Virus record (IMG/VR): IMGVR_UViG_3300035180_001778
Coordinates: 1-64,000 of that record
Strand: one strand, 5' to 3'
Length of the DNA: 64,000 bases
The translations under genes were made by a program, and so were the position numbers. Positions within the stretch are counted from its first letter, which is position 1. Each line of letters starts with the position of its first letter. The notes under the pieces were generated by a model. The model was not told the DNA's origin and made no database searches. It saw only the letters and a list, made by a program, of their open reading frames with translations. Below are positions 8,271 through 59,461 of this stretch, in pieces.

Positions 8271-8303
8271 CGTGTATAGGGTTTTTTTAGGAAGATCCTC
8301 AGT

Positions 8304-9047
8304 GTGATCCTGAACCTTCCTCCGTCCGCTGGGCTTGCTCGTGAGCAGGCGATCCGAGCACTCGTCGCAGACGGGACCTTCGACCCTATTCTGTGGTCCA
8401 CGGTCACCTCCGACCATGGCGAGCACCACGCCGAGTTCCAGGTCTTCTCGGATGCCCTCAAAATCGAGGGCATCCGGATCAACGCTTCCGCCGAGACAGA
8501 GCAACACCTCGCGGATCTTCTCGGCTGCTCTCTGCTCACCCCGAAGCTGGCGGATCTCATCTGGGCGCAGAAGTCCGTCTCTTTGGAGCCGTCGATTCAG
8601 CCGTTCGATTCTTCCACGGCGGCGATGCTCGCACACAGCTCACGGATCGATGCAGCTCTTGCCGCTCAAGGCAACCCCCAGGGCATCGTGTGCAACGTCG
8701 GCAAGCACTGGGTCATCGACAACGCGATTCTCTCCCACCCGGGCTTCGTCGAGAACTACGGCTGGCACTTCGAGGGCGTGGGGTTCAAGGGCATCCGAGG
8801 GGAAGCCAATGTCTCTCTCACGAAGGACTCCAAGGGGCGCTTCGTCCGCGTCATTCAGGGTTGTGGGTGGCAACACAACATGGCGCACACGGACTACAGC
8901 CAGACGGTCACCCTCGTCTCGTTGGGCTGCACGGTCGACGGTCAGGACATGCACCTGTTCGACGTGTTCCGGAGCCCGGAGCTGGCGCCCCTCGTGAGCC
9001 ACAACGGAGCGCTGAAGCTCGTGCGTCTTCCTGGCGTGGGCCAATGA
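8304..9047 (+). CDS. Hypothetical protein (NYGWH...HN.AHTDYSQ motif)
   Basis: 247-aa GC3-rich ORF ending at a terminator. Confidence 0.75.
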   Translation: MILNLPPSAGLAREQAIRALVADGTFDPILWSTVTSDHGEHHAEFQVFSDALKIEGIRINASAETEQHLADLLGCSLLTPKLADLIWAQKSVSLEPSIQPFDSSTAAMLAHSSRIDAALAAQGNPQGIVCNVGKHWVIDNAILSHPGFVENYGWHFEGVGFKGIRGEANVSLTKDSKGRFVRVIQGCGWQHNMAHTDYSQTVTLVSLGCTVDGQDMHLFDVFRSPELAPLVSHNGALKLVRLPGVGQ

Positions 9048-14008: not shown

Positions 14009-14584
14009 TCACTCCCCAATGGAGTCGTCGAGGATTGCTTCCCACGCGTTCGTGACCCCGAAGTGTTCTCGCACCAAGATGGCAAGCTTTCCGCACATCT
14101 CGATGGAGAATCGGGCGATGTGGGCCTCTGTGGGGAGGATGCCCATGGTCTCAGCCATCCAGGTGTAGGCCTGGATTCGGCTCAGATTGGAGCCGGGCTG
14201 GTTCCAGATACGGTCGAAGACCAGGTGGACCGCAGTGCGGGCTTGACGGGTCGCGAGATCCCCAGGGATACCTTTCGGAGCGCCGTCTGCATTGGCCCCG
14301 TGAGTGCCCTTGCACGCGGGGTAGGAAGGGCACCCGTAGAAGAGCCCGTGCATGGACTTTCGGAGCTGCATGAATGTCTTCGCGCAGTCGGGGCACTTCA
14401 AGTCGAAGCGCTCACCCGAGAGACCCATGCCCACGGGTTTCTCGTCCATGTCGATGTCGTAGATGGTCTGAACCTTGGGGTTCTTGAACAGGTCCTCAAC
14501 CGAGATGTGGTCACACGAGGTGTACGGCTCGTTGGGGTTGAAGATGGCCCGGCAGATGAGGCAGCGCGGAGGGCTCATCCCCAT
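14009..14584 (-). CDS. DUF3268-like zinc-finger protein with tag (TNAWEAILDD)
   Basis: CPDC...FYGCPSYPAC...GIPGDLATRQAR..VH.VFD.IW...AY.WMA...HIARF. Confidence 0.75.
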   Translation of the reverse strand: MGMSPPRCLICRAIFNPNEPYTSCDHISVEDLFKNPKVQTIYDIDMDEKPVGMGLSGERFDLKCPDCAKTFMQLRKSMHGLFYGCPSYPACKGTHGANADGAPKGIPGDLATRQARTAVHLVFDRIWNQPGSNLSRIQAYTWMAETMGILPTEAHIARFSIEMCGKLAILVREHFGVTNAWEAILDDSIGE

Positions 14585-14635
14585 GCCGCTTTGGGGGTCT
14601 AGCTGATGGGGCATCCCTTATATGGACACCAAGAG

Positions 14636-15148
14636 CTAGATGTCGTCGTCGTCCATCTTCTCCCAGGCCGTCGGACGACGCTGATCGTTCGGCTTCCCCG
14701 TGTCGATCGACGTGACTTGGCCGTTTTCGATGTGGATGGTCGTACGATCTGCGCCGGTCTTGACAGGATCGAAGTTGCCCATGATCCAGAACGCAGGGGT
14801 GCTCCCAGGCTCGATCGTGAGCTTGAGATTTCGGCCCCCCGTGTGTTCGATGGATAGGTCGAAATTCCGATGCGATTCTTTCCCATTGCGGACCGCCGAG
14901 CGGATTTGATACTTCCCCGGCTGAGTGGCTTGTCTCTCTCGATAGACCAGTCCCCCCGTCGAGCGGGCTCCCGCTGCAATCGGAATGTCGTCCCATTCCC
15001 CCGTTGCTGCGAACTGATGCTGCACATGGTCATTCCCCCCGATGGGGGTTGTGGCCGTGGCGACGAGCATGAGGAGGTCTTCGTCCCCTTCATCAACGTC
15101 GAGAGGTTCGAGTTCGACGACATCACATGTGAAGTTGATCCGGATCAT
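14636..15148 (-). CDS. Hypothetical protein with tag (PTAWEKMDDDDI)
   Basis: ATGA overlap with the upstream gene. Confidence 0.7.
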   Translation of the reverse strand: MIRINFTCDVVELEPLDVDEGDEDLLMLVATATTPIGGNDHVQHQFAATGEWDDIPIAAGARSTGGLVYRERQATQPGKYQIRSAVRNGKESHRNFDLSIEHTGGRNLKLTIEPGSTPAFWIMGNFDPVKTGADRTTIHIENGQVTSIDTGKPNDQRRPTAWEKMDDDDI

Positions 15149-15978
15149 GACTTGGACCAGGCGAGCCCGGCCTCCAATTCGGCGGTGAGGTTTTGATTGA
15201 GCTTGCGGAGTTTTGCGGTATCGCTTCGAGTCGTCGAGAATCCAAGGAGTATGCCGATCGGGCAATGGGTGATCAGCGCCCATCGTCGGACTTCAGAGGC
15301 GAGAGACACGAGCTGGCGAAGAGCATCCTTGTTCTCCGCTTGAATGGCCTGGTCCAACCCATTGAAGGCCAGAACCAAGCTGCTCTGGATCTCATTCTGA
15401 GAGGCGAGGGTGCGGAGGAAGCACAGCACTTCCACTTTCTCTCGGAAGGATGTGCGAAACTTCGAGACTCCGAGGGCCCGGAGCCTCTGTACCTCATGCT
15501 CTCGGAGGTGTGCATCACGGATCCACCGTCGAAAGATATCGAACAGCTCCTCAGCTTGAACCGAGTTCTCTCGACGCAAGAACCTGATTTCCCAGAGGAG
15601 CCGGAACACATCGTGCTCCAGGTAGTGGGTCGTGTCGGCCATCGTTCGGATGGTGCCCTCCAGATCGAGGTCCTGACAGGAGACGAGCGCTGCTATGGTC
15701 GTGTCGAGGCCCACCTCCAACCAGGCGTCGTTTTCCGGGTCGCACTCAAAATGGGTGATCCCCCCGATTCGGGCCACTGCTCGAAAAGTCAGGCATCGCT
15801 CCATCGGTGTGCCCGGGACAACCATGAGAGGGGTGTGACCCGGCGAGCCGAGGGTCTTGGCCCATTCGGTCGCGGTCTCAAGGGAGATCACAGGGGACGG
15901 CATGGGCTCAGGGGTTCGCCTCTGCGGCTCGGGCCGCAGCACGGCCCAGTAATCGTCCAGCGAGGCATCGTCGTACAT
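15145..15978 (-). CDS. Hypothetical protein, 277 aa
   Basis: GGTGTA motif 10 nt upstream. Confidence 0.75.
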   Translation of the reverse strand: MYDDASLDDYWAVLRPEPQRRTPEPMPSPVISLETATEWAKTLGSPGHTPLMVVPGTPMERCLTFRAVARIGGITHFECDPENDAWLEVGLDTTIAALVSCQDLDLEGTIRTMADTTHYLEHDVFRLLWEIRFLRRENSVQAEELFDIFRRWIRDAHLREHEVQRLRALGVSKFRTSFREKVEVLCFLRTLASQNEIQSSLVLAFNGLDQAIQAENKDALRQLVSLASEVRRWALITHCPIGILLGFSTTRSDTAKLRKLNQNLTAELEAGLAWSKS

Positions 15979-15988
15979 GGGGAGAGGT

Positions 15989-15994
15989 TACACC
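15989..15994 (-). promoter_or_regulatory. Class II motif GGTGTA (representative)
   Basis: 10 nt before ATG 15978. Confidence 0.65.
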
Positions 15995-16069
15995 GACTTC
16001 GACAGGTAGCTTCTAGTATGTTAGATCACGTACTAGACGGAAACTTGAAAGTCTCCTCTCCAGATAGAC

Positions 16070-16585
16070 TCACTGTTCCTCGACTCCGGCGAACATGTCC
16101 ACTGCAACAGGCACGGAGATAAGCTTGTCACGCATCCAGGTCGGGACAGGATCGGATGCGAGGTAGCTGTAGGACACCCAGTGGGCCGGGGGCTCGTCAA
16201 ACTGCGTGGAGATCCCGATACGAAGGTTGTTGAAGAAAGAGGCGATGAGCTTTGCAGCTTTCACCTTGGCCTCCTTCTGACTGGGCATCTTCTTGAGGCG
16301 CTCGAAGAAGCCTTTGGCAATCTCCTTGAGCCTTTTCAGACACCAGACCAGCTCGTCTGCGGACCGAACCAAGAAGAACACCTGGTTCGGTTCCTCTTCG
16401 TTTTCGGGCCACGTTTGGGCTAGCCCCAAAATGATGGTGGCGTCCAGAATCGACAGATCACGTTCGTTGTGGGAGAACCCTCGTGCTTTGGGGTATGCTG
16501 CATAGAGATGTTCTTGAGTCGAGTCCGGAGACTTGCTCAGGAACATCTCGTGAATCGCCTTGAGCTTCTTTGAGTCGATGGGCAC
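16070..16585 (-). CDS. Hypothetical protein
   Basis: GTG start 9 nt from GGTGTA. Confidence 0.7.
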   Translation of the reverse strand: MPIDSKKLKAIHEMFLSKSPDSTQEHLYAAYPKARGFSHNERDLSILDATIILGLAQTWPENEEEPNQVFFLVRSADELVWCLKRLKEIAKGFFERLKKMPSQKEAKVKAAKLIASFFNNLRIGISTQFDEPPAHWVSYSYLASDPVPTWMRDKLISVPVAVDMFAGVEEQ

Positions 16586-20209: not shown

Positions 20210-21552
20210 TATCGCTTGTCCTTGGCCGTGGGGCCGAACGACTTGATGGTGATCGGCGTCTTCAGGAGGTCTTCGATCGTGGGGATGAACATTCCCCAGT
20301 TGACCTTCTCTTCCAAGTACACCGGACACGCCTGAGAGAGATTCAAAGAGATTTTCTCTCGGTCGTCAAAACGCCCCCGGATATCGGACACCCAAGACAC
20401 ATCCCTCAACTCCGATGCAACACCCAGGCCCCCCAGGTAGTCCACACATATCCTGTGCGGTTCATTCGTCCGCAGACACGCCACATCGCAGTGCGTCATG
20501 GCGATCTCGTCGACACCCCCAATAACCCTCAGAGCGTATTGGGTGGCAAACGCGTCGAAGGCCCCCAACCTGAAATCCTGTTGCCAGGAGTTGAGCGCGT
20601 TGTGCTCGACCTTCGGGGTCGGGAGAAAGACGCCCTTGCCTTCCGTGACGAACGGACCCGCCCCGTGCCGGGTCATGTAGGACCGGAGGATACCGATCTT
20701 CCTGATGTCCCCCGAGAAGCCTTCGATCAGGTTGAGGGCGTTGCCGAATGTCGTGTCGGACCAGGTCGTGTAGGGGTGGAACCCGTAGTCTTGGTCGAGC
20801 AGGACACCCTGAGCGCCCTCGAAGATCGTGGTCCCTTCTTTCATGATGCGCTGGAGATAGGCTGAACCGACAACCTGGAGCGGGAGCTGGCGGAAACCAT
20901 TCAGCAAATCCCTGATCACAGGGTGAAGGCTGTTGCTCAACAGCATGTTCCACTCTGCCTTGAAAGAGCAGATGCAGTCGAGGTCCCTGGACTTGCACTC
21001 GGGGCTGTGGAGATGAGACAGCTCTGTGAGGTAGCGATCCCGGACCTTCGTCAACTGGATCCCAACCTTAGCCCGGTCTTCCAGGTCTCCGACTTGAAGG
21101 TCGTGATCCGGGAAGCTCAAGTGACTGCTCACCGTCTCGCCGATCCCCATTCCACAGGAGCCGTGGCGGTTCGAGCGGGCCATCTCCCGGATGCGGTTCG
21201 CCGTCACATGGTAGGGCGTTGTGACCAGAGCTTCTCTCTCGATGGTCAGCCGCTCGAAGGCGTCGAGGACACCCACAGAACGGAGGTGCTTCTCCTCGGA
21301 GAGCATGAAGATCGGGTTCACGAGCATGTGCCGGCTGAGGTGCGTCTTCACTCCGGGCACGAAGGTGGCGCTCCCGAACTGAGCGAAGGTGTGATGCCGA
21401 CCATCCTCCAGGACCACGTTGTGACCAGCCTGTGCTCCTCCGTTAAATCGGCACACTACCTTTGCGTTGTGTTTTCGGGCCAAATAATCAACGATGGTTC
21501 CTTTACCTTCGTCACCATAATTCAACCCAAGAACAATCAACGCTTCAGACAT
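20209..21552 (-). CDS. Adenylosuccinate synthetase (PurA)-fold ligase, divergent
   Basis: GLNYGDEGKG, GGAQAGHNV, FEGAQGVLLD...HPYTTWSDT. Confidence 0.85.
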   Translation of the reverse strand: MSEALIVLGLNYGDEGKGTIVDYLARKHNAKVVCRFNGGAQAGHNVVLEDGRHHTFAQFGSATFVPGVKTHLSRHMLVNPIFMLSEEKHLRSVGVLDAFERLTIEREALVTTPYHVTANRIREMARSNRHGSCGMGIGETVSSHLSFPDHDLQVGDLEDRAKVGIQLTKVRDRYLTELSHLHSPECKSRDLDCICSFKAEWNMLLSNSLHPVIRDLLNGFRQLPLQVVGSAYLQRIMKEGTTIFEGAQGVLLDQDYGFHPYTTWSDTTFGNALNLIEGFSGDIRKIGILRSYMTRHGAGPFVTEGKGVFLPTPKVEHNALNSWQQDFRLGAFDAFATQYALRVIGGVDEIAMTHCDVACLRTNEPHRICVDYLGGLGVASELRDVSWVSDIRGRFDDREKISLNLSQACPVYLEEKVNWGMFIPTIEDLLKTPITIKSFGPTAKDKR

Positions 21553-22114
21553 GACTAACCTCGAAATGCTTGAGATATATACTCTTCACGTGCTCTAGGA
21601 ACGCTTCGAGTGAAAGAGACCTCTTGGCGTAGTTGCAAATTGCGCAACATGTGACGACGTTATCAGTCGTGTACCCAAGGGAGTTGTTCTTCCGATCGAT
21701 ACCGTTGTATGTGATGGAACTACCAGTCTTTCGGACCCCTTTGGGGATGCGCCGGCAAACACTTTTGGGGGGAGCGCCGCAGTAGTAGCACGCACACTTG
21801 ATGAGCGTCTGGAAGGCGGCAGCCGACAAGTCCCAGGAATGGCCCCTTCGAGTGGCGTGTCTCTGGTAATTCTTCGACAGAGCTGCAAGTGCTGAAGCTT
21901 CTCTATCCTGACGAGGCTTGGACCCATGAGGCAAACACCCACAACTTTTGGTGTTCCCTTTCTTCAAGGATTCTGCAAACCCCGTCCAATCGTTCCCGCA
22001 CGCGCACTTCCCTCGGACGATTTGGCCCCTGTGCTTGTACCCGAGCTTGTGTGCCCCTCCCAGCGATTCGCACACAGTAATCAGTCCGAATGTTTGTCCG
22101 AGCAAGTCTTCCAT
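21545..22114 (-). mobile_element. Free-standing HNH homing endonuclease gene
   Basis: GQTFGLITV, CACG, SCGC, CYYCG, YNGIDRKNNSLGYT..NVV.CCAICNYAK; visibly lower GC. Confidence 0.8.
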
Positions 22115-25603: not shown

Positions 25604-26987
25604 AGAAGATGTGACGTTCCGAGATTTTCCGGATCTCGGCGAGGGTCGGCTGAACCAGGATCTTCCCGTTCTCGAAGACCGGGATGAGGGCGCTGTTCCG
25701 GCGCAAGCCCTGGACGGTCTTGTACTCGCCGTTCTCGTGTATGAGGTCGAGGAGCCCTGCCTTCGAGCGCTTGCCCTTGTCGGTGACGGGGTCCTTGAAG
25801 ACATCCCGGGGCTCGCCGTCGACCACGATGTTCGAGCACTTGTAGGCGAAGCGCTGGGTGTCGCGATTGACACCCTGAAGCAGAGCGCCACCCATGCCGA
25901 ATCCGATGTTCGAGGCGCTGTAGCCGTTGGCCATCATCACGTTGAGGATCTCGCGAATCGACTCCTCGTTCACGCCGTCGCCCTGGATCAGGCGGATGTA
26001 CTTCGGAAGGACCTTGAAGCCCTTGGTGTTGGTCGTCATCCCGACCTTGCGCTCCAAGATATGGAGACACTTGAGGATGACCTCCGAAGGATTGCCCGAG
26101 TCCGGCCGGATCACGAGGGTCGCGCCCGACTCCTTGATCTCCTCGCGGAGGGTGTCACCCCAGATGTTCTCGACCGTGTTGTAGAGGTCGTAGGAGTCGC
26201 TGACGCAGGCGAACATCTTGCCCGGCTTCGCGAACTGGTGAACCATGTTGCGGTAGGCGTCGATCTCGTTCGACTTGCCCCAGCTCGTGATCGTCGAGTG
26301 CTCCGACGCGGGGATCGAGAAGCCCGCCATCTTGTCCTTGTAGTAGAAGTTGGCGAAGCGGATGCCCTCGATGGTGTCCGAGCCGAGGAAGTTGACCAGG
26401 TGGCTCATGCCGCCGATGCCGGCCGATTCCCGCGAGCTGACGCCCCGGCTGCCGAAGTCGTGGAGCTTGAATCCGATCTCGCCGACCGGGTCATCCGAGG
26501 ACTTCACGAGGGCCTCGAAGATGATCTTCTTGATGAAGAACGACTGGGTGGCGACGGTGATCGGATACCAGAGGCGCACGAGCTGGTTCTCGATCCACGA
26601 GCCGACCCACGGAGCCTCGGAATCCGTCGACTCGACGGTCATGAGCACGTTGTGCGTCGGGACGAGCGTGCCTTCCGGAACCGCGTTGATCTTCACCGGG
26701 TAGAAGCCGCCCTTGGCCACCAGACGGTCCCAGGCGGCCTTGGGGAAGGGCTCACCATGGAGAGCGGCGAAGTCGGCCGCTTCGTTGACGTGGGCCTGCG
26801 TGAAGCCCTTGCTGAGGTACTCCTGGCACAGGTAGCTGAGGCCGAAGAACAGGGTCGAGCCGTAGCGGCCACCGCGCGACTCGAAGTAGTTGAACATGCG
26901 CGTCATGCCCGGCGGATATTGCAGCTCGGGGTGCGAGAGCTTGTAGCTGTCGGTGTCGAGGATCGGGTTCGTTTCGTACGTGGTCAT
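25602..26987 (-). CDS. nadV: Nicotinamide phosphoribosyltransferase
   Basis: TDSYKLSH, HDFGSRG, ASEHS, VSDSYD, IRPDSG, IQGDG, FGMGGALLQ..NRDT. Confidence 0.92.
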   Translation of the reverse strand: MTTYETNPILDTDSYKLSHPELQYPPGMTRMFNYFESRGGRYGSTLFFGLSYLCQEYLSKGFTQAHVNEAADFAALHGEPFPKAAWDRLVAKGGFYPVKINAVPEGTLVPTHNVLMTVESTDSEAPWVGSWIENQLVRLWYPITVATQSFFIKKIIFEALVKSSDDPVGEIGFKLHDFGSRGVSSRESAGIGGMSHLVNFLGSDTIEGIRFANFYYKDKMAGFSIPASEHSTITSWGKSNEIDAYRNMVHQFAKPGKMFACVSDSYDLYNTVENIWGDTLREEIKESGATLVIRPDSGNPSEVILKCLHILERKVGMTTNTKGFKVLPKYIRLIQGDGVNEESIREILNVMMANGYSASNIGFGMGGALLQGVNRDTQRFAYKCSNIVVDGEPRDVFKDPVTDKGKRSKAGLLDLIHENGEYKTVQGLRRNSALIPVFENGKILVQPTLAEIRKISERHIF

Positions 26988-26998
26988 GGGGGTCTCCA

Positions 26999-27715
26999 TC
27001 AAATCTCGAAGTTGAAACCTTCACGAACAGCTCGCTCGTAAGCAACGCTGTCGAATCTGTAGAGGGTTGCTCGTCGGTGCGGAACACCAACCTGGACACC
27101 CGCCTCTTTGAGGATGCCCATTGCCAGGATGCGCTTGCGGAAGTTCCGCTTGTCGAGCGTCCGATTGAGGATCAGCTCGTAGAGCGATTGCAGCTCCGTC
27201 AGAGAGAACTTCGGCGGAAGAAGGTTGAACCCGATGGGGGCATATCGAACCTTCGCCTGGAGCCTTGCCCAAGCATCCTTGAGAATCTTGTCGTGATCGA
27301 AAGCCTTGTACATCTGGAGGGCTTTCTCGATCGGCCACCACTTGGCCTCTGCCGCATCATCACCACCCTTGACCGGATGGTCTTCCAGGCGGACCAGAGC
27401 GTAGTAGGCGACCGAGATCACCCGGCCTCGCGGGTCTCTCCCGGGGGTTCCGTAGGTGCCGAGCTGCTCCAGAAAGCCCACTTGAGCCCCCGTCTCCTCG
27501 CTCAGCTCACGTTGCGCCGCTTCGTCCAGGGACTCGCCCTGATTCCCGGTATCCGAGGTCTCGACGAACCCGCCCGGAAGAGCCCACAACCCCTGAAAGG
27601 GATCGGAGCCACGGCGGATCAGGAGAACGTGCATCTCCTTGAGATGGTCTGCGACGCCGAAGACAACGCAGTCGACCGTGACGGACGGTCGGGGATATTC
27701 GTACGTGTGACTCAT
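26999..27715 (-). CDS. nrtR: NrtR-family Nudix-related transcriptional regulator
   Basis: TVDCVVF...WALPGGF Nudix domain plus wHTH: [11 protein letters not shown]...[10 protein letters not shown]...ATLYRF. Confidence 0.88.
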
Positions 27716-27756
27716 GGTGTTTCTTCTACACCAACCATGGTGTGCTTTTCACACAA
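27715..27756. promoter_or_regulatory. Two tandem NrtR-operator-like palindromes overlapping the nrtR start and promoter
   Basis: TGGTGT-N7-ACACCA (27715-27733) and TGGTGT-N7-ACACAA (27738-27756). Confidence 0.65.
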
Positions 27757-47670: not shown

Positions 47671-48336
47671 ATGCCCGAGCTTCCCTACGATCCTTCGAGC
47701 GACTTCCACATCATCGGCTGTGATGAGGCTGGCTACGGAAGCTGGGCTGGGCCTCTTGTCGCTGCGGTCGTGATCGCCCCAGCGGGTTGGTGTGGCTCGC
47801 CTCGGATTCGGGACTCGAAAGACCTCACGGAGAAGAGGCGCAAGCTCGCTTTTGACGAGCTGATGGCCGACCCCTCCATCAACTGGCTCTGGCGCTTCTC
47901 GGACTCGGTCGAGATCGACGCGAAAGGGGTCTACGTGTGTCTTTGCCAGATGCACACGGCCAACGTCGCATGGGCACAGGCTCTCATGAAGGAGAGCCAC
48001 CCGGGCTCGACCATGGCCATCGTGGATGGGAACCTCAAGATTGAAGGGGCTCGGAGCATACACAAAGCGGACAGCTTCATCCCGGCGGTCTCCGCTGCCA
48101 GCATCATCGCCAAGACCATTCAGAGCGAGATGATGATCGAGATGGGCAAGCTCTACCCCGAGTATGGCTTCGAGCAGCACAAGGGCTACGGCGGAGACGA
48201 CGCCCACCAACACACGCGGGCTCTTCAGGCGCACGGACCTTGCTCGATCCACAGGCGAAGCTACGAACCCGTGGCCCGAGTCCTCCGGGAGCGGTCCGTG
48301 GATGAGCCGCTCCTTTCTTGGGAGGTCGACCTGTAA
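47671..48336 (+). CDS. rnhB: Ribonuclease HII
   Basis: GCDEAGYG..AGPLVAA, DSKDL, DGN, KAD...VSAASIIAK, HKGYG, IHRRSY. Confidence 0.92.
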   Translation: MPELPYDPSSDFHIIGCDEAGYGSWAGPLVAAVVIAPAGWCGSPRIRDSKDLTEKRRKLAFDELMADPSINWLWRFSDSVEIDAKGVYVCLCQMHTANVAWAQALMKESHPGSTMAIVDGNLKIEGARSIHKADSFIPAVSAASIIAKTIQSEMMIEMGKLYPEYGFEQHKGYGGDDAHQHTRALQAHGPCSIHRRSYEPVARVLRERSVDEPLLSWEVDL

Positions 48337-49043: not shown

Positions 49044-49976
49044 ATGTCCTCCCCCGCGCGCCCCTTTCTCAAATGGGTTGGTGGCAAGACCACCCTTCTA
49101 TCCTTCCTCCTCAAGACCTACCCCAAGAAGATCGGGACCTACTACGAACCCTTCCTTGGGGGTGGCGCTAGTTTCTGGGCGCTCGCTCAAGAGAAGAGGT
49201 TCGAGAAGGCCGTCCTGACCGACTTGAATGCCGAGCTGGTCAACGCATACCTGATGGTCGGCGGCTTCGGTGAAGAGGTGATTCGAGACCTTCTTGCGGT
49301 ACAAACCGCGTATCGCATCGCCCCCAAGGAAACGTTCACGACCTGGCGGCAGATGGACCCGGCGCTTCTGGAGCCGGTCACCCGAGCTGTCAGGATGATC
49401 TTCCTGAATAAGACCTGCTTCAACGGCTTGTACCGGACCAACAAGAAGGGGCAGTTCAACTCTCCCTGGGGGAAAGAAGAGAACGCCTCGATTTGCGATG
49501 GGGCCAATATCTCGGCTTGTGCGGAGGTCCTCCGGAGGGTCGATTCGACACTGGACGGACTCACCATTCAGCACAAGCCGTGGTGGCAAGAGGTCTCTCA
49601 GGCTCAGCCGGGGGACCTCGTCTACTTCGATCCCCCCTACGTGCCGGTCTCTGACACCGCGAGCTTCACGGGATACACTTCAGAGGGCTTCCCTGAAGCG
49701 GAACAGAGAGCCCTCGCCAAGAGCTTCTCTGAGCTGGCAGAACGTGGGGTGGCCGTCGTCCTCTCGAACTCGGATACGCCCCTTGTGAGAGAGCTGTACG
49801 AGGGGTGGGAAATTCACGAGGTGAAGATGGGGCGCTCTATCAACTCGGACGGAGCGAAGCGCGAAGCTGTGGGCGAAGTGGTCGTGGTGGGTCGCCGGGA
49901 CGGACTCACCCCTTTCATCTCGGAGCACCAAGAAGACCCCTTCGCCTACATGAACGCCCTCATGGAAGAGTTCTAG
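49044..49976 (+). CDS. dam: Dam-like (D12 class) N6-adenine DNA methyltransferase
   Basis: FLKWVGGK, EPFLGGG, FNGLYR.NKKG.FN.P.G, YFDPPY. Confidence 0.9.
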   Translation: MSSPARPFLKWVGGKTTLLSFLLKTYPKKIGTYYEPFLGGGASFWALAQEKRFEKAVLTDLNAELVNAYLMVGGFGEEVIRDLLAVQTAYRIAPKETFTTWRQMDPALLEPVTRAVRMIFLNKTCFNGLYRTNKKGQFNSPWGKEENASICDGANISACAEVLRRVDSTLDGLTIQHKPWWQEVSQAQPGDLVYFDPPYVPVSDTASFTGYTSEGFPEAEQRALAKSFSELAERGVAVVLSNSDTPLVRELYEGWEIHEVKMGRSINSDGAKREAVGEVVVVGRRDGLTPFISEHQEDPFAYMNALMEEF

Positions 49977-51225
49977 CGAACTTGACCTTCCCAGGGATGG
50001 CGATGTGGAGCCAGTGTCGGACTTGCTCCGGCACTCGGCCGGGACCGTAGGCGACCATGAGCCCAATGGCCTCGCAGAAGGCCTCCTCGGGGTTCTTGTT
50101 GGCGTAGGCTGTGATGGGTGTCGAGGGGACTCGAACGGTCTTGGTGCCCTCTGAGAGGAGCTTCTCGAAGTCGTCTCGGTTGAAGCGGTCGTGCAGGTAG
50201 GCACGGTCGTGAGACAGCGCATCGAGCTGGAGCGCAAGAACGGGGTCCGATGTCTCCAGGTGCTTCATCAGCGAATGCGTGAAATGTCCGACGTTGGGGG
50301 GCCACTTGCTCAACAGCTCGGCGATGTCGAGTTCCTTCAGGTCCCCGCTGATCACGGCGTACCAGAAGTCGCTCCCATCCTTGCCGAGGTGCTTGAACAG
50401 GTGGTGGCCCATCTCGTGAGCCATCACATGGGTTGCCCACTCGGGCCGTTCTGAGATCAAGGAGGCCGTCGAGAGAGTGATGGTGCCGTCTCCGTTGTAG
50501 CGGCCCCCCTCATCGAGGGTCATCCCGAAGTCCAGGATGACCGGGAGCTGGTTCTGGATCAACCAGGGGAGAATCTTGGCGGCTTTGGTCTTGTAGTCCT
50601 GGAGCCCCTGCTTCAGCTTCGAGAGAACCTTCTCATTCCAATGCGTATCGGACAAGTCGGTTCGATCGGACTTGAACCCGTGCATGATCACCTGGAATCC
50701 TTCCAAGGTGATCGTCTCATCCTTCGGGACATCAACAGGGATTTCGGGCGCCATCCCATTTGTCTTGAGCATCTCGAAGACTTCACGCATCGCTGTCCAG
50801 AAGACTCGGGCTTTGGCTTGAACGCGAGCCTTCCACTTGGGGGCATTGCGCTCGAACTCCAAGAACCGGCTCTCCTCGGAGTAATACTCGTTGGCAAACC
50901 CGATGGGCATGCTCTTCAGCTCCGACATCCATGTCCAAGCGACCGCACGAGTCTTGTGGTCGATCCAAGAGACATCGTGTCCTGTTGCCTTGGAAATGTC
51001 GTACTTGACGGCGTCCCCAAGGAAGTGCTTGAAGAACATGTCATCGAACCGATTGGAGTAGATCCGAATCGCTACCCGCAGCTCATGCGCTGTCTTGTAG
51101 TCTTTGACCAGGGGTATGTTCTTGACCAGCGTCAAGAAGTCCTTCCGGAGCTTCTCGATGAGAGCAAGGTCGACCATGACCTTGTCGGCGATCAGGAACC
51201 TGGCGAGAACTCGGTGAGCGATCAT
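49960..51225 (-). CDS. Zincin metallopeptidase-like protein with N-terminal RVLARF motif
   Basis: HEMGH; PITAYANKNPEEAFCE. Confidence 0.8.
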   Translation of the reverse strand: MIAHRVLARFLIADKVMVDLALIEKLRKDFLTLVKNIPLVKDYKTAHELRVAIRIYSNRFDDMFFKHFLGDAVKYDISKATGHDVSWIDHKTRAVAWTWMSELKSMPIGFANEYYSEESRFLEFERNAPKWKARVQAKARVFWTAMREVFEMLKTNGMAPEIPVDVPKDETITLEGFQVIMHGFKSDRTDLSDTHWNEKVLSKLKQGLQDYKTKAAKILPWLIQNQLPVILDFGMTLDEGGRYNGDGTITLSTASLISERPEWATHVMAHEMGHHLFKHLGKDGSDFWYAVISGDLKELDIAELLSKWPPNVGHFTHSLMKHLETSDPVLALQLDALSHDRAYLHDRFNRDDFEKLLSEGTKTVRVPSTPITAYANKNPEEAFCEAIGLMVAYGPGRVPEQVRHWLHIAIPGKVKFARTLP

Positions 51226-52958
51226 CGGAAGGACACCGGGCGCAGGAAGTAGTAGGCAAACCACTTCTCGCTCTCATACCCCTTCATCGCGTCCAAGAGG
51301 TCGTACATCTTGTCGCTCGGGGCCTCTCGTCGGATTTCTGCGTCCGCTGCCTTGATGCGGCGTTCGAGATTGTCGAGCCAGTGATCGAGGGCTTGGGCCA
51401 TCTTGGGATCGCTCATGTCCTGGGGGACCATCTCCGCCGTGACCTCCCGGGCGTACCGCGTCCCCTTGAAGAAGAACTGGAACCACTTGGTGTGTTGGCG
51501 CTCGCCGATGGCATCCGTGAGCTGCACGAAGGCCTTCCCGGGTGTGCCCTGCCCCCGAAGCTCCTGGTTGGCCCGCTGAGTCAACTGGAGCAGGTTGTCG
51601 AGCCACTTGTCGAGGTCCTTCGACATCGTTCCGGGGTCAACCCAGGAATCGGAGTTGTCGTCGTAGTAGCTCGCTTCCTTGTACTTCGACATGAAGCGGG
51701 CGAGGATCCGTTCCGACTGGTCATGCTCTTCGGGTTTCCCGTGGCAGCTACAGCTCTCGCACCCCTGCTTGAGGGACGCCGCCTTCTCGTGGAGCTTGTC
51801 CATGACCGTCCCATCCTTCAGATATGTGTCCTCCAGTCCGGGGACGAGATACTGGCTCTTCAGCGTGGCAGGCTCGTGGCCCACGGCTTCCGCTGTGACT
51901 TCGAGGGCTTCCTTGAACTCTTCCTTGAGCTGCTTCTCCCGCTTCTTGGGGTCTTCGGGGAGCTTGCCGCCCTTCTTCCTGGAGGCCTTGAGCTGGTCCT
52001 GCATCTCGACGTTCGCGTGCAACCCACGGATGTCCTTTGCCGAGATGTCAAATTCCTTCAGGTAGGCGTTCACCTTCTCGGCTGAGACCTTGCCCCCGTC
52101 CCACTCGAAGATACAGGACGTCTCGTTCTCGGCCGCCTCACAGGCATCCTTGAGCGCCTTGGTGATGGTCGAGTCGGTCACCTTCTTGACGTGCTTGACG
52201 CCGGACTTGCCGACGTACTTGATGGTCGCCCCGCCCTTGCTGAAGGTGATGTGGTCCTTCTGCCAGCCCGTGACCCCGAAGTGCCCGTCGTCCGCGCTCT
52301 CGTCGTTCCCGACCCGCTCGAACGTGTGATCCATCAGCATCACGGCGAGGGCCGTGAGCATCTTCTCGGGATCGCTCGACTTCAGGTCCTTCTTGGCCTT
52401 CGAGCGGACGTCGTCGATCTTGCCCCGGAGCTTCTCGATTCGCTTCGCCTTCTCCCGGTTCCGGTTGGCGATCTGCTTGTCGGAGTACTCGTAGACGGTC
52501 ATATCCTCGCCGTCTTGAGTCTTGACCTTCTTTTTCTTCTTGTAGCGGGCCGCGACTTTTTCGGTGATACCCATCATCTTGAGTTCGATCGGGGAGTAGA
52601 ACTGGAACACAGGGTTGGGAATGGTCACGGTCGACGCCGAAGAGATGTCGTCCCGCTGGAACACGTAGGGATTCCCGATGGTGCCTCCCTTGGGGTCGCG
52701 GGATGTCCACAGCTCGGACTTCCCATACACTCCCACGAAGACGATCCAAGAGCCTCCGTCGATGACCCCGAGGTAGCCTCCAACCTCTTTGGGGTTGGAG
52801 TAAATCTCCGTCAGGCCCGCGGTCAGAGCAGGGTGGTCCGCCATCTCCGGCGGTAGAGGCATCCCCCCGGAGCTTCCCCTTGCCACGACGGATCGTAGAG
52901 CGGCCTCCCGGCGGGAGACGACATGTTGAGCAGCTACTCGGAGGGACCGGCTGTGCAT
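51222..52958 (-). CDS. Type IB DNA topoisomerase embedded in a multidomain protein
   Basis: FERVGN, YVGKSG, KDIRGLHAN, VGHEPATLKSQY (R/K/R/H/Y catalytic set). Confidence 0.85.
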   Translation of the reverse strand: MHSRSLRVAAQHVVSRREAALRSVVARGSSGGMPLPPEMADHPALTAGLTEIYSNPKEVGGYLGVIDGGSWIVFVGVYGKSELWTSRDPKGGTIGNPYVFQRDDISSASTVTIPNPVFQFYSPIELKMMGITEKVAARYKKKKKVKTQDGEDMTVYEYSDKQIANRNREKAKRIEKLRGKIDDVRSKAKKDLKSSDPEKMLTALAVMLMDHTFERVGNDESADDGHFGVTGWQKDHITFSKGGATIKYVGKSGVKHVKKVTDSTITKALKDACEAAENETSCIFEWDGGKVSAEKVNAYLKEFDISAKDIRGLHANVEMQDQLKASRKKGGKLPEDPKKREKQLKEEFKEALEVTAEAVGHEPATLKSQYLVPGLEDTYLKDGTVMDKLHEKAASLKQGCESCSCHGKPEEHDQSERILARFMSKYKEASYYDDNSDSWVDPGTMSKDLDKWLDNLLQLTQRANQELRGQGTPGKAFVQLTDAIGERQHTKWFQFFFKGTRYAREVTAEMVPQDMSDPKMAQALDHWLDNLERRIKAADAEIRREAPSDKMYDLLDAMKGYESEKWFAYYFLRPVSFR

Positions 52959-52963
52959 GGGTT

Positions 52964-54841
52964 CTACATCAGGGGCGACGTACAAGAGAAATCTCCCCCA
53001 AGAAGCTGGAACCGAGCGAGGACTTGCTCAGCGGTCACGAGGGAGGATCGCTTCAGGATGAGCTTGAAGGTTTCGAGCTGGTCACGAGACATGTCCCAGT
53101 TCATGACGTAGGACCGAAACACCTCGGCCCATGCTTCGCCAATGTTGCTCCGGCCATAATCAGAGACAGGGAGGACCTCACGAGGATCAGCATCCCACTC
53201 GTCTTCCCAGGCCTTGGTGCGAAGCTCGATGTTGGTTTCTTGAAGCTCCTTCGCGTTCGAGTCCTTGATCGATTCGTCGATGAATGCGAAGGAGGTCTTC
53301 ATCGATTCGTCGATGAGAGCAATGCCCTTTTTGGCCCAAGCCGCCAAGATAGCCTTGAACGCAGTGTTCTTTGCCTCCTCGTCAGGGTACTTGGTGAGCT
53401 TCAGGGCCAGCTTGGGTGCCGCTTTGAAGTACACGTAAAGAGCCTTGCTCTTGGCGAAGGCATCCCAGTACAGCTTCTCGATCTCGGGGGTCCCTCGCTT
53501 CCAGGTGGTGTTCGTGAACACACTGGAAAGTTCATCCCGATGCTTCTTCGCAGCCTCTTCCAGAGGGGGCCCGAACTTGGCGAGAGTCTCCTGATACCCC
53601 AATTTGGAGTCCGTCATGTTCCCCAAGGGCTCTGCAATCGCCCCGAGGAGATCGAGAATCTGGTTTTTGCCCTTCTTGATCTTCTCGGGAGGGATGATGT
53701 AGGGGTCCCTCGTCTTCTCGGGCTTCTTGTTCTTATGCACCCGGACGAGGCTCTCAAAGAACTCTCGCTGTCTTGAGGAGAGCTGATGGAACCAGTACCT
53801 ATGGCCCAGCTCGTGGGCCATATAGCCCACGATGTGTTCGCTAGGGCGGGCGTAAATCATGACGACGTCTTTGCCGATATTGTATCTACCGGCTACTCCC
53901 AGGTCCGCCCCATTTTGATTGACCCCACCGCACGACTCACATTGAATGAAGACGACACCATACCACGCAGACTCAAGCTTCTTGGCTCGAAGGCGGTTGT
54001 AGGTCTCGTCGAGGTATCTGATGTAGAGACGGGTGTCGTCAGGGGTGACCTTCGAGTCCTCGATGATGACCCGCATCCCGTACATGTCAAAGTCGGTGAC
54101 TGTCGGAGTAGGGTTCGCTTCTTGGGCTTGTGCTGAGAACTTCTCGATGAGGTCCTTTTGAACGACGTCCACCCAATCCATGATCCATCCCCCGAACCCA
54201 GAGGGAGACTTGAGCAGAAGCTTCTTGCTGGCAGCGGTGAACCCCGACTGAGTCAGGTACTCCCAACGCCGCTTGCTGTCCGCGTCGTCTCCAAAAGACT
54301 CGGCCATGCCGTTCTTGAAGGCGGCGATCAGCTCGGGGGTTGTGATGCCCTTGAGGGCTTTCTGGACAAGGCTGTCCCGCTTCGGTAGGTCCACCCTCCA
54401 GTAGTACTTGATGTAGTCGAGCAGCGTGGAGACCTGGTCTTTGAAGGCGTACTCGATGTCAATACGTATCGTCCACTTGAGATACCCCTCGATATCCCCC
54501 GGAGCCGGAGTAGGGACAGATGTCAACATCTCCGCTGACTTCTGAGCCACCATGAGGTTCTCGGCCATGATCTTGTACCGAGTGTTGATGTACTCCCGGG
54601 CCGGGGCGAACGTGATGATGCTGTTGAAGTCTTCCTGGAATTCCAGGAAGAAGGTCTTCAAGTCCGTCATGACCTTGTACGCCACGTCCTCGGGGCTATT
54701 CGAGTTCCCCAGGGGAGTCTTGAGGCGCTTCCGCAATTCGGCCTTCTTCTCTTTGAAGAACTTGCTCGAAAGGAAGAACTCCGGGTCAGGAGCCTTCTTC
54801 GCCCCAAGGAATCGGGAAACTACACGAGAGGATAGAGACAT
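52964..54841 (-). CDS. Large zincin metallopeptidase-like protein with RVVSRF and QVLARF motifs
   Basis: HELGH; PVSDYGRSNIGEAWAE. Confidence 0.8.
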   Translation of the reverse strand: MSLSSRVVSRFLGAKKAPDPEFFLSSKFFKEKKAELRKRLKTPLGNSNSPEDVAYKVMTDLKTFFLEFQEDFNSIITFAPAREYINTRYKIMAENLMVAQKSAEMLTSVPTPAPGDIEGYLKWTIRIDIEYAFKDQVSTLLDYIKYYWRVDLPKRDSLVQKALKGITTPELIAAFKNGMAESFGDDADSKRRWEYLTQSGFTAASKKLLLKSPSGFGGWIMDWVDVVQKDLIEKFSAQAQEANPTPTVTDFDMYGMRVIIEDSKVTPDDTRLYIRYLDETYNRLRAKKLESAWYGVVFIQCESCGGVNQNGADLGVAGRYNIGKDVVMIYARPSEHIVGYMAHELGHRYWFHQLSSRQREFFESLVRVHKNKKPEKTRDPYIIPPEKIKKGKNQILDLLGAIAEPLGNMTDSKLGYQETLAKFGPPLEEAAKKHRDELSSVFTNTTWKRGTPEIEKLYWDAFAKSKALYVYFKAAPKLALKLTKYPDEEAKNTAFKAILAAWAKKGIALIDESMKTSFAFIDESIKDSNAKELQETNIELRTKAWEDEWDADPREVLPVSDYGRSNIGEAWAEVFRSYVMNWDMSRDQLETFKLILKRSSLVTAEQVLARFQLLGGDFSCTSPLM

Positions 54842-54844
54842 GGT

Positions 54845-55852
54845 TCAGTCTTCCCCGTCGTCGAGCATGGCGGCCTGGGTGTAACGAGCGAGCACCTTCT
54901 GAGCAAGAGCCGGCGGAGGGTCGTGCCAGATCTTGTAGAGGCCGATGATTTGGTTCTTCTTCCGGCCCTTGGGGACGGGCTCAATCTCGATGATGGGGTT
55001 CCCCTTGACGTCGAGCCCCACGGAGACGATCCTGCCCTTCTTGTTCTTGTACTTGCCGTACAGAATCCGGTCCCCCACATCGAAGAATCCCCGAGCGGAC
55101 ACGCTTTTCGAGGCGGTCATGTGGTGCGAGTAGACTTCGAGAAACTGCGCCTCGAACTCCCCAATCCGAGTTGAATCGTTCTCGTCGATCTTCACGTTCG
55201 CTGGGACCAAGACGTAAGCAGTTGCCATCTCGTATTCTTCGCTGATGTTCGTCTGAAGGATGGACCCACCCATTGCCGCCAGCTCGTGTTCGAGCCTCTT
55301 GACCATGGTCTGTGCGAGTTCCACAGACCATCCGCCAAAAGGGATGTCGAACTCGACGTAGCCCTTGAGAGGGAGTTGCTGTCCCTTCTCGTGGTGGCTC
55401 TTTCGAAAGCGAACCAGGTACTCGATGTACTTCGCGTCGTGGGGGGAAACGAAGACAGCGACCACGTCAGCTACCCGGACGCTGGCCGTCACGACCTCAT
55501 ACCCTCGCATCTGGGCGAAGTGTGTTGCCATCTTGAAGGACGGCGTCCAGGAGAGGAACTTCCGGACGATCGCCGGCTTGTCCACGGGCTCCCCTCGGTA
55601 GAGCGTGACCTCTGCCCCATGCTTGCTGTGGACCAGGTTGCGGACTGGCGTGTAGAGGTCGTACAGCTCGTCAGCATGGGCTTCCAGGGCCGGCGCAGAG
55701 CCTCCGAACACCCCGTGAAGGAAAGTCTCCACGCCGTGCTTCAAGTCGCTCGGAAGAGCCTCGAACACCGCAAGAGCGGCCTCTCGAACAGCCCCGTCCG
55801 TAGCGAGAGTCCCCGCGTATCTTTGCGCCACTTTTGAGGAAGCCGGAGCCAT
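54845..55852 (-). CDS. ADP-ribosyltransferase-like domain plus C-terminal SH3-like domain
   Basis: R-S-E pattern TLYRG / LSWT / IEYLV; KVAQRY and KVLARY motifs. Confidence 0.6.
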   Translation of the reverse strand: MAPASSKVAQRYAGTLATDGAVREAALAVFEALPSDLKHGVETFLHGVFGGSAPALEAHADELYDLYTPVRNLVHSKHGAEVTLYRGEPVDKPAIVRKFLSWTPSFKMATHFAQMRGYEVVTASVRVADVVAVFVSPHDAKYIEYLVRFRKSHHEKGQQLPLKGYVEFDIPFGGWSVELAQTMVKRLEHELAAMGGSILQTNISEEYEMATAYVLVPANVKIDENDSTRIGEFEAQFLEVYSHHMTASKSVSARGFFDVGDRILYGKYKNKKGRIVSVGLDVKGNPIIEIEPVPKGRKKNQIIGLYKIWHDPPPALAQKVLARYTQAAMLDDGED

Positions 55853-57654: not shown

Positions 57655-58650
57655 CTACCCGTCGATGAGATTCCTGTAGGGCTCGTCGTTGACCTCCGAG
57701 TAGAAGGTCTCCTTGGGGCCTTCGAACAGCGCGAGAGTCCGACGGATCATCTCGTAAGGCTGCGGATCAGTCGGGACCATCGTCCGATTGAACCCCGCGG
57801 CTTTCGTGTGTCCGCCACCCCCGAAGACCTTCGCGAACTTCGCACAGTCGAACGTCGTGTGGCTCCGCGTCGAGAACGCGAGCTTGTGGTTCTCCCCGTC
57901 GAACTGGCATGAGAACCCGATGACGAGGTCTGCATCCTCGCCAAGCAGCTCCGCTGCATCGCTCGTCGTCGTGAGCCCCTGGAAGACCACCACCCGCGTC
58001 CCGACCGGCGTCGTGTAGCGGTAGGCCCTCGCCACAATGCTCTCGACCTTGGCTTGCTGCTTCTGGACAAGGACGGGCCCGATCTCCGCAAGGTCGGACC
58101 AATCGATCGCATCACACTTGAGCCACTTCTCTCGCGGCCAGAACAGAAGCGCTTCAGCCTGAGCACAGGCTTCGAGCCAGCGAGGGCTTCTCCTCTGCCA
58201 GGTGTCCCGGATGCCAGCGAGGGTTGCGAAGTCTTCGATCAGCTTCTCATAGGCCGTGGGCCTCGTTCGGCCTGCGAGCCGGCACATCGGACGCCACACC
58301 TCACGGAAAGCGAGGACCGCTCCGGAGACACCCGGTTCCAGAGCTTCGTCTGCGTAGACGCTGTTCTCCCCGAAGGACTTGATGGTCGCCTCCGAGGACT
58401 TGTGGTGGTCGAGCACGATGGCGCCCGCGTCCACGAACTTCTGGGCCTGGTCGGCGTGAGGGGTGAAGTCGCAGAAGAGCATCCCCGGCTTGGGCTCCAG
58501 GGCGGCCAGCTCGGGGGACATGTGCCGCATGAAGACGATCTCGGCCTTGGGCAGAGCGTCATGCAGGATCATCGCTGAGGCGAGACCATCCGGGCAGTTG
58601 TCGTGAACGATGAGGGTGGTGACGGCGTCGAGCTTGTCGAGGGAGATCAT
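57655..58650 (-). CDS. DHH/DHHA1 phosphoesterase
   Basis: HDNCPDG, DFT, LDHH, GGGGHTKAAG. Confidence 0.88.
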   Translation of the reverse strand: MISLDKLDAVTTLIVHDNCPDGLASAMILHDALPKAEIVFMRHMSPELAALEPKPGMLFCDFTPHADQAQKFVDAGAIVLDHHKSSEATIKSFGENSVYADEALEPGVSGAVLAFREVWRPMCRLAGRTRPTAYEKLIEDFATLAGIRDTWQRRSPRWLEACAQAEALLFWPREKWLKCDAIDWSDLAEIGPVLVQKQQAKVESIVARAYRYTTPVGTRVVVFQGLTTTSDAAELLGEDADLVIGFSCQFDGENHKLAFSTRSHTTFDCAKFAKVFGGGGHTKAAGFNRTMVPTDPQPYEMIRRTLALFEGPKETFYSEVNDEPYRNLIDG

Positions 58651-58659
58651 CCCACGCAG

Positions 58660-58931
58660 CTACACCAAGAACGTGCGCCCAAGCTGGAGAGCGCGAGCAT
58701 CCGCCGCTTCTTTTGCCTTCTCGAAGTCCAGATCGAAGCCCTTCCAGTCATTGGACCCATGACAGACCTTCCAGATCCATCCCAGCCCCGGCTTTCTTTG
58801 GAGCCAAGTCTTCTTCTCGGTTTCATCGATCTCTTTTGGGGAAAGAGACATGATTGACGACCCAGTCTCGTGATCACGACGACAGAGAAAACGAGCGTCT
58901 GCTGAGGCAGGTTCCCAGATCGAAGGATCAT
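58660..58931 (-). CDS. Hypothetical protein (probable 5' frameshift; alternative start 58851)
   Basis: ATGA overlap at 58931; +1 base in C3 at 58914-58916 gives MILRSGEPASADARFLCRRD... Confidence 0.55.
58661..58666 (-). promoter_or_regulatory. Class II motif GGTGTA (representative)
   Basis: 10 nt before ATG 58650. Confidence 0.65.
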
Positions 58932-59461
58932 GCTCGGTAGGTCCCTCCAGGGACGTCGTACACGTAGACATCGAGGCCACCCATGGTCTCTTCGATGATC
59001 TTGGAGACCTCCGCCCAAGACCCACCCGCGAGCCCACAGCCGATCCTCGGCATGTGGATCGTGGCTTGGGTGGTCCTGGCAGCCTTTGCCACCTTCTGGA
59101 GGCACTTCCTCAGTGCGTCGTAGCGAATCGGAGGCCCGTCATCGTCTGCGCCCTTGTGCTGCGTCTTCTTGGAGCCGTAGCCGGTTTGGGCGATCATGTT
59201 CATCACCCAGATCCCGTTGTCCTCATGGGTCTTCCCCTGGACGCTCACGCTTTGAACCTCCCCAAGAGCGAACGGTCCGCTTCGAGGATGCTTCCCGTTT
59301 CGATACCACTCTCGGTAGGCGATCTCGGGGTCAAACCAACGCCCCGAGATCGCGAGGACGAATCCAGCGCCCCATCCCCCGACGTCGTTGCAGATGTGGA
59401 CGATGTATCGCGTCCCCGTGCCTTGGGGTCGGACGGCATTGCCGATGAGGTAGTGGATCAT
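58928..59461 (-). CDS. Macro-domain protein (Poa1p-like ADP-ribose-processing type)
   Basis: HICND.GGWGAGF, NMIAQ, IRYDAL..CL, MPRIGCGLAGG.W. Confidence 0.88.
   Translation of the reverse strand: MIHYLIGNAVRPQGTGTRYIVHICNDVGGWGAGFVLAISGRWFDPEIAYREWYRNGKHPRSGPFALGEVQSVSVQGKTHEDNGIWVMNMIAQTGYGSKKTQHKGADDDGPPIRYDALRKCLQKVAKAARTTQATIHMPRIGCGLAGGSWAEVSKIIEETMGGLDVYVYDVPGGTYRA

Follow-up and report, generated by a model that had tools for sequence, protein, structure and literature searches.

A short helical motif recurs at the ends and module joints of putative split polyvalent proteins in an uncultured huge-phage clade

The first 64 kb of a 350-kb IMG/VR viral contig carrying phage-type genes (IMGVR_UViG_3300035180_001778; these 64,000 nucleotides are hereafter the window) contains a cassette of four minus-strand open reading frames (ORFs), arranged head to tail from 55852 to 49960, whose products share a short RVLARF-type peptide motif that we call the tag. 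The cassette encodes an ADP-ribosyltransferase-like (ART-like) protein (55852..54845, 335 amino acids (aa)), a zincin peptidase with an HELGH motif (Pep2; 54841..52964, 625 aa), a type IB topoisomerase protein (Topo protein; 52958 (ATG)..51222, 578 aa) and a second zincin with an HEMGH motif (Pep1; 51225 (ATG)..49960, 421 aa), the starts used for the last two (MHSRSL and MIAH, respectively) being those backed by homologues. Five nucleotides separate the Pep2 and Topo genes, and the Pep1 start codon overlaps the Topo stop codon (ATGA). The TGA stop of the ART-like gene (54845..54847) is followed two codons on, in frame, by the Pep2 ATG (GED*TM), with only TGA-ACC (54839-54847) parting the two genes; the same layout is present in a 77%-identical relative (L005), the a priori chance of a shared frame being 1/3, and we record it as a same-frame arrangement and claim no read-through. 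The same cassette sequence was found in four sediment or microbial-mat metagenome DNA runs, with no variation in the tags among runs, and no RNA run was among the public runs listed for it in a search (kind any) that was not aimed at RNA runs.

The tag occurs eight times in the cassette, always on the minus strand. In the ART-like protein it reads KVAQRY at residues 7-12 (55817-55834; score 15.1 on a position-specific scoring matrix (PSSM)) and KVLARY at residues 319-324, 11 residues from the C-terminus (54881-54898; PSSM 26.1) and within a modelled helix (residues 315-330). Pep2 carries RVVSRF at residues 6-11 (54809-54826; PSSM 26.6) and QVLARF at residues 606-611 (53009-53026), the latter identical in L005/P0002. 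Three copies lie in the Topo protein, namely RVAAQH at residues 7-12 (52923-52940; conserved in L005), KVAARY at residues 134-139 (52542-52559), immediately ahead of the KKKKK with which the Topo IB domain begins, and RILARF at residues 417-422 (51693-51710), after that domain and matched by RVIARF at the equivalent L005 site, while Pep1 begins with RVLARF at residues 5-10 (51196-51213; PSSM 26.3). All four proteins therefore have an N-terminal tag within residues 5-12, and at two places in the window a protein with a C-terminal tag is succeeded by one with an N-terminal tag. An earlier sequence-only reading had placed these eight copies at termini or domain boundaries; every position was confirmed, and homologues of both peptidases show the same placement. 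In a six-frame translation of the window, a regular expression matched eight times, always at these copies, with none in the ~15,900 residues of the other predicted genes and a mean of 0.013 matches in shuffles of the four cassette proteins, and, the expression having been built from the same eight copies, independent support comes from conservation in homologues. Codon use varies between copies (e.g. AAAGTGGCGCAAAGATAC versus CGTGTAGTTTCCCGATTC), so the tag is a peptide-level signal, and a DNA-level repeat or promoter as the source of the motif is ruled out. Short Cys words were also seen beside C-terminal and internal tags, including FSCTSPLM and EDCSCTST at C-termini, SSCTSPM, GNCQS and GSCQS (Pep2 tail, 52967-53005; Topo linker, ~51711-51760; also in P0142, P0013, P0021 and L005); GCESCSCHG precedes the third Topo tag, and some relatives end in CxxC-rich tails.

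Across 222 copies in relatives, the tag forms the core of a ~12-residue helix with the pattern L/I (hydrophobic), A, x, R/K, V, A, A/S, R, Y/F, L, x, A, in which the position after the invariant R is occupied by Y (43%), F (40%), W (2%) or His (15%). The [KR]-x-A words that the sequence-only reading had noticed after several copies are not conserved in these residue frequencies. N-terminal copies begin 5-7 residues downstream of the initiator Met and C-terminal ones finish 4-10 residues short of the stop; 92 of the 222 copies are internal and 35 C-terminal, and tandem pairs occur. By PSSM count, N-terminal, C-terminal and internal tags number 23, 10 and 1 among 32 proteins of the Pep2 family and 42, 26 and 18 among 118 of the Pep1 family, the corresponding figures for the family of a barrel domain described below being 44, 11 and 54 among 137; the matrix, which was trained on the same protein set, found 0 matches in shuffled sequences. 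The Pep2 homologues (n = 32, 30-45% identical, on contigs of up to 465 kb) show RVAARY, RVAARF, RVASRY, KVVARY or RIAARF at residues 5-13 and commonly another copy that lies within a few residues of the C-terminus. The tag persists in relatives that are only 30-50% identical, its residues being more conserved than the carrier proteins (30% overall), and it is attached to more than eight unrelated folds, among them Topo IB, two zincin families, ART-like, 2H phosphoesterase, GNAT, nucleotidyltransferase, GGACT and the barrel. In several Pep1 relatives (P0092, P0098, P0101, P0081 and others) a second tag, M(x)Y-[ST]-Y-D-R-R (YSYDRR), occupies the same N- or C-terminal sites; 52 Pep1 relatives carry only the RVAARF-type tag, 21 only YSYDRR and 0 both, such that one third of tagged Pep1 relatives have YSYDRR in place of the first tag. 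No paper was found when the literature was searched for the motif strings.

The Topo protein is the only multi-module product of the window, where the modules otherwise form four ORFs separated by stops. Its order is tag, N-domain of no assigned family, tag, Topo IB, Cys-rich linker, tag and a duplicated C-terminal domain. Residues 164-368 (51855-52469) match Pfam Topoisom_I (PF01028; E = 1.5e-25, 90.3 bits against a cut-off of 23.7), and KSQYL at residue 367 is, by inspection, the likely active-site Tyr motif. The C-terminal domain (residues ~425-578, 51225-51690), for which no family was found, appears to duplicate a ~65-residue unit (DKWLDNL...KWFQFFF and DHWLDNL...KWFAYYF). Homologues of the Topo protein start M-x5-[RK]VAARY-K-x-KKK. 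The second tag is the exact point at which L005 divides the Topo gene: RVAARY stays on the upstream ORF, an inserted 92-aa ORF starts MNDLTL-RVAARY, and the Topo ORF restarts M-x9-RVLAKY-K-x-KKK. In the same relative only barrel and tag remain of the ART-like gene, and Pep1 is absent. Tags are likewise retained on both sides of the ART|Pep2 and Pep2|Topo splits. Conversely, five giant relatives (P0293, P0290, P0308, P0218 and P0269; 1,409-2,425 aa) all combine Topo IB with the barrel and add GGACT, GNAT, 2H phosphoesterase or PolyA_pol (nucleotidyltransferase). Because relatives fuse these modules around Topo IB and L005 splits Topo at the tag, we regard the cassette, on comparison of the sequences, as the split polyvalent-protein locus of an uncultured huge-phage clade, whose members lie on contigs of 200-550 kb; the sequence-only reading had been silent on this split-polyvalent nature and on the barrel. 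A separate 4-kb contig of a related phage from the same habitat (run X3 record 18) joins a Topo-like segment directly to a barrel-like one (window positions 52481 and 54912), skipping Pep2, another sign of module shuffling.

Both peptidases belong to the zincins. In Pep2, the HELGH motif (residues 343-347, 53801-53815) is accompanied by GEAWAE (residues 568-573); H343, E344 and H347 are invariant in 24 homologues, as is the HExxH plus distal Glu arrangement. Neither a significant sequence match of Pep2 to lethal factor or PPEP nor a significant Foldseek hit of the whole Pep2 model against the PDB was obtained, and a sequence-profile search of the PDB returned only helical-bundle noise; VIA-align was needed to see that the catalytic domain of the AlphaFold2 (AF2) model (predicted local distance difference test (pLDDT) 84.7) superposes on anthrax lethal factor (Z 10.7) and PPEP-3 (Z 9.8). 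Pep2 is, as modelled, a lethal-factor/PPEP-like zincin with a four-helix-bundle insert and a tag at both ends. The insert is similar to helical-peptide-binding bundles of the FAT/vinculin type, a generic fold and hence a weak hint. AF2 confidence in the terminal tag helices is low (pLDDT 43-49 over residues 3-16 and ~54 over residues 604-615), so the tags do not appear to be packed against their own Pep2, and the idea that the tag packs onto its own enzyme is not supported by these values. Pep1, with HEMGH at residues 270-274 (50404-50418) and EEAFCEA at 380, shares the Glu-helix motif with Pep2 and is a second zincin family; many of its 260 homologues are fused to Topo IB, with tags at the N-terminus, at the Topo-peptidase joint (~residue 270) and at the C-terminus.

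The ART-like protein consists of an N-terminal tag, a putative ADP-ribosyltransferase-like region, a C-terminal SH3-like barrel and a C-terminal tag. Its enzymatic assignment stands only weakly: beyond a weak KOW match it hits no Pfam family, no PHROG family of known function was found, and protein-atlas matches to DRAT (score 0.86, TM 0.44) are leads only, whereas the zincins and the Topo IB of polyvalent kind were borne out. YRG, SWTPS and IEY are conserved in three homologues (P0035 and P0036 among them). The AF2 model has a mean pLDDT of 66, poor over residues 102-163, 72-75 (moderate) in the C-terminal tag helix and 93-96 in the barrel; P0035 and P0036 are misaligned mid-protein in the underlying alignment, which probably degraded the model there. 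Most matches to the protein cover only its last 60-90 residues, at 50-72% identity and in more than 40 otherwise unrelated proteins, and correspond to the "GKYKNK" basic SH3-like (KOW/Tudor-like) barrel (54917..55090, minus strand, residues ~255-312). This domain is strongly basic, with a core G-K-Y-K-N-K-x-G and an invariant loop EP-x-PKG-x-K-x-N, and in most relatives a tag lies 6-8 residues before it and again after the barrel and a linker, followed by a variable enzyme. Searching 1.84 billion cluster representatives with a barrel profile gave 362 matches, the shortest being stand-alone forms of 80 aa and the longest proteins of 2,425 residues. The fold superposes on Tudor (Z 9.0), NusG KOW (Z 7.6) and Spt5 KOW (Z 7.2); the match to Pfam KOW is sub-threshold (E = 0.073, 13.4 bits, cut-off 22.3), and no Pfam family or PDB match by sequence was found. 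Among 185,579 species genomes the barrel occurred only in four contigs of metagenome-assembled genomes (60-205 kb, presumably phage), and it was absent from deposited phage genomes (tblastn, 50,697 phage records). Judged from its modelled fold, the barrel is a putative new and very conserved SH3-like domain family.

When Pep1, Pep2, the Topo protein and the barrel were compared by tblastn with the same 50,697 phage records, only the unannotated, uncultured 485-kb LR745208.1 was found; a megablast of 20 kb of the window gave no match. This complete genome encodes approximately ten proteins tagged near a terminus, comprising enzymes and small proteins of no known function. They include three tagged zincins, a Topo protein with two C-terminal tag copies and a 2H phosphoesterase protein with three modules, each beginning M-x5-tag. 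No barrel was detected in LR745208.1 (hmmsearch, E <= 10), and an obligatory role of the barrel as receptor of the tag is ruled out, given its absence beside some ten tagged proteins.

The cassette lies among DNA-metabolism and counter-defence genes. Its flanking genes, assigned by eye from similarity to annotated neighbours in relatives, are RNase HII (47671-48336) and a Dam-type methyltransferase (49044-49976) on one side, and a DHH-family protein (57655-58650) and a macro-domain-like protein (58928-59461) on the other. Across distant huge phages (contigs of 310-549 kb) the order is kept, with macro and DHH genes, the cassette and Topo, followed by Dam and RNase HII on the opposite strand; within the syntenic region of a 464-kb relative (L007) there are also two IS605 OrfB / Cas12f-like (TnpB) genes (1690-2808 and 14350-16299). 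A promoter-like DNA motif, GGTTGATCC - 16/17 nt - TGTAGGAC - 4 nt - ATG, occurs ten times in the window ahead of small genes (77-164 aa), with the ATG at 22538, 23163, 34264 and 40239 on the minus strand and at 40600, 44285, 48378, 55922, 56302 and 57405 on the plus strand. The position of its -10-like box, ~6 nt before the ATG, suggests leaderless transcripts at these ten genes. It is probably what the sequence-only reading had termed the class I motif; no copy lies ahead of any of the four cassette genes, and one serves their divergent neighbour. A promoter and terminator scan of the cassette gave no more sites than shuffled sequence. Auxiliary genes of the window include an adenylosuccinate-synthetase homologue matching a PHROG named 2-aminooxy adenylosuccinate synthetase, NAMPT beside a Nudix hydrolase (NAD salvage) and a 2H phosphoesterase with a weak match to Acb1, which acts against the cyclic-oligonucleotide-based antiphage signalling system (anti-CBASS) (coordinates jointly: 20212-21585, 25605-27020, 27002-27748 and 7230-8639).

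The reading that we rank first, while holding it only tentatively, is that the tag, by binding a separate partner, gives enzymes that travel or work together a common address or docking point. It is proposed because the tag is an amphipathic helix with invariant residues, sits on free ends and linkers, is unpacked in Pep2, recurs on more than eight folds, is kept on both sides of splits and in tandem, and can be swapped for YSYDRR. Such a portable helix on flexible ends or linkers could bring unrelated enzymes to one common place. The most plausible destination, although we consider it doubtful, would be the capsid: the enzymes may enter the procapsid interior and be delivered with the DNA, in the manner of the T4 capsid-targeting sequence or encapsulin cargo peptides, and the zincins would probably cut fused modules apart. 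A fuller version, to which we give similarly guarded credence, is that huge phages run an encapsulin-like cargo loading, in which the 12-residue tag (or YSYDRR) on either end of an enzyme loads a swappable arsenal for co-injection and the basic barrel anchors the cargo to DNA; that this arsenal would comprise Topo IB, peptidases, ART, 2H phosphoesterase, GNAT and others is held no more firmly.

Several observations weigh against an address of this kind. The sequence-only reading had expected the motif in capsid, scaffold and other head proteins, and none of the tagged proteins of the window or of LR745208.1 is a recognisable structural or head protein, a soft negative, as the structural proteins of the clade can barely be annotated. 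The neighbours of the cassette are not head genes, and no recognisable head gene is present among the genes of the window, the capsid gene of this phage lying elsewhere than in these 64 kb. No cultured relative with a virion proteome was found in the 50,697 phage records, many giant fusion proteins carry one tag only, and the PSSM was trained on the proteins in which the tags were then counted.

The nearest competitor, in our view an unlikely one, is that the motif is a processing site cut by Pep1, Pep2 or a prohead protease, so that polyproteins are released as modules and their ends trimmed. The tag does lie at module joints in fused relatives (the Topo-Pep1 joint and the three-module 2H-phosphoesterase polyprotein), zincins accompany it in every genome examined so far, and a proposal made for polyvalent proteins is that such peptidases bring about autoproteolytic release (PMC5512222). 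An invariant R followed by Y/F would also suit a hydrophobic S1' pocket, to judge from general zincin specificity. However, stand-alone enzymes keep the tag 5-8 residues from the N-terminus and 4-12 from the C-terminus, where cutting achieves little, copies occur in tandem and on both halves of split genes, and several giant fusions lack a tag at most joints. A Glu immediately preceding the motif, the cleavage context of the T4 and phiKZ type, was found before 25% of internal, 12% of N-terminal and 11% of C-terminal copies, and no conserved site follows the motif. Because copies are also found C-terminally, internally and in tandem, and flank splits on either side, a binding tag fits better than a site that is only cut. 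Of the earlier proposal, what stands is that the motif is a genuine functional signal of the peptide, placed at protein ends and between modules. Binding to a partner and the rival explanations are not fully exclusive; in T4, the address is also cut off.

Somewhat less probable still is a capsid-independent arrangement in which the helices bind each other, or a groove on a sister module (the four-helix insert of Pep2, for example), and rebuild a multi-enzyme complex like the docking domains of split polyketide synthases and nonribosomal peptide synthetases (PKS/NRPS). The two C-terminal-then-N-terminal tag successions in the window, gene fusion and fission exactly at the tag, and the small A-A residues on one helix face, which would suit tight packing, point in this direction, as does, weakly, the likeness of the Pep2 insert to peptide-binding bundles. 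Yet a single tag sequence shared by every partner would not specify which pairs with which, the C-terminus of the Topo protein, which faces Pep1, carries no tag, no tagged neighbour lies within ~20 kb of stand-alone tagged peptidases (L006), and the barrel does not serve as receptor in LR745208.1.

It is improbable that the word is a relic, that is, the first or last helix of flanking domains (for instance the N-terminal helix of a Topo IB subfamily) spread by domain shuffling without a function of its own. The direct abutment of tag and Topo domain ([RK]VAARY-K-x-KKK), the spacing of 6-8 residues before the first strand in barrel proteins and the moderately confident C-terminal helix of the ART-like protein would fit this origin; the occurrence of the same helix at either end of so many unrelated folds, its low-confidence, unpacked state in Pep2, the stronger conservation of the tag than of its carriers and the replacement by an alternative tag at the same site do not. 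In bacteria, an N-terminal F, Y or W is an N-degron, and tags for AAA+ proteases are found at either terminus. A timed-destruction tag that limits the lifetime of potentially toxic early enzymes, possibly exposed by cutting before the aromatic residue, would match the terminal location and the Y, F or W after the invariant R, but it is very improbable, as His at that position is not an N-degron and internal and tandem copies are not explained.

Should the tag prove to be an address label, the particles or compartments of huge phages would gain their first general cargo signal defined by sequence. The mixing of counter-defence enzymes would then be explained by genes that fuse and split at the tag, the delivered proteome of uncultured phages could be listed from sequence alone by a simple rule, and foreign proteins could be loaded with the same handle. 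Whatever the mechanism, the analysis defines a new short linear motif, a putative new SH3-like domain family and a Topo IB-centred class of polyvalent proteins, which together make testable the long-standing question of what proteins a huge phage delivers along with its DNA.

Among known systems, the closest parallel is provided by the polyvalent proteins of phages and conjugative elements. As described by Iyer et al. 2017 (PMC5512222), these combine enzymatic domains (ART, GNAT, nucleotidyltransferase, 2H phosphoesterase) around hubs, most commonly zincins related to anthrax lethal factor, and are thought to be packaged and injected, with an apparent counter-defence role. The cassette resembles them in being phage-encoded and in the zincin hub, with HExxH and distal Glu in Pep1 and Pep2; it differs in that the hub here is a type IB topoisomerase, the modules form four separate genes, and they are marked by a 12-residue tag and an SH3-like barrel, neither of which was found in the literature by term search. 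The word topoisomerase has a single occurrence in the text of Iyer et al. In T4, the diverse anti-defence internal proteins have nothing in common but a capsid-targeting sequence (PMC3012670, PMC5694885). Like the tag, it is a short (10-20 residues) N-terminal peptide on diverse proteins, one of them an ART; unlike the tag, it is strictly N-terminal and removed by the prohead protease after Glu, whereas the tag is also C-terminal, internal and tandem, has no conserved Glu and shows no sequence similarity to it, and packaging is only its proposed role. One short terminal peptide on unrelated, co-encoded enzymes is also the common feature with encapsulin and microcompartment peptides, from which the tag differs in its motif, in its carrier, a lytic-type huge phage and not a cellular compartment, and in its partner, which is here a presumed one. 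Encapsulin cargo-loading and microcompartment encapsulation peptides are short, lie at the N- or C-terminus, are helical in microcompartments and target unrelated, co-encoded enzymes to a protein shell, and encapsulin shells have the HK97 phage capsid fold. Pep2 matches anthrax lethal factor and PPEP in HExxH plus distal Glu and in catalytic fold, and departs from them in its large four-helix insert and helical N-domain. The barrel shares the five-stranded SH3-like fold and the pattern G-D-x-I-x-x-G-K-x-K-x-K-x-G with KOW, Tudor and chromo barrels, but falls below the Pfam KOW threshold, has its own EP-x-PKG-x-K-x-N loop, is strongly basic and is limited to huge-phage contigs. Finally, Topo I is present in some cultured jumbo phages (PMC7824862), and the Topo protein shares with these and with pox-like and bacterial type IB topoisomerases the Topoisom_I core and an SKxxY-type Tyr motif, while differing from them in being set between extra domains and tags and, in relatives, in its fusion to peptidases or other enzymes, the fused chains reaching 2,425 residues.

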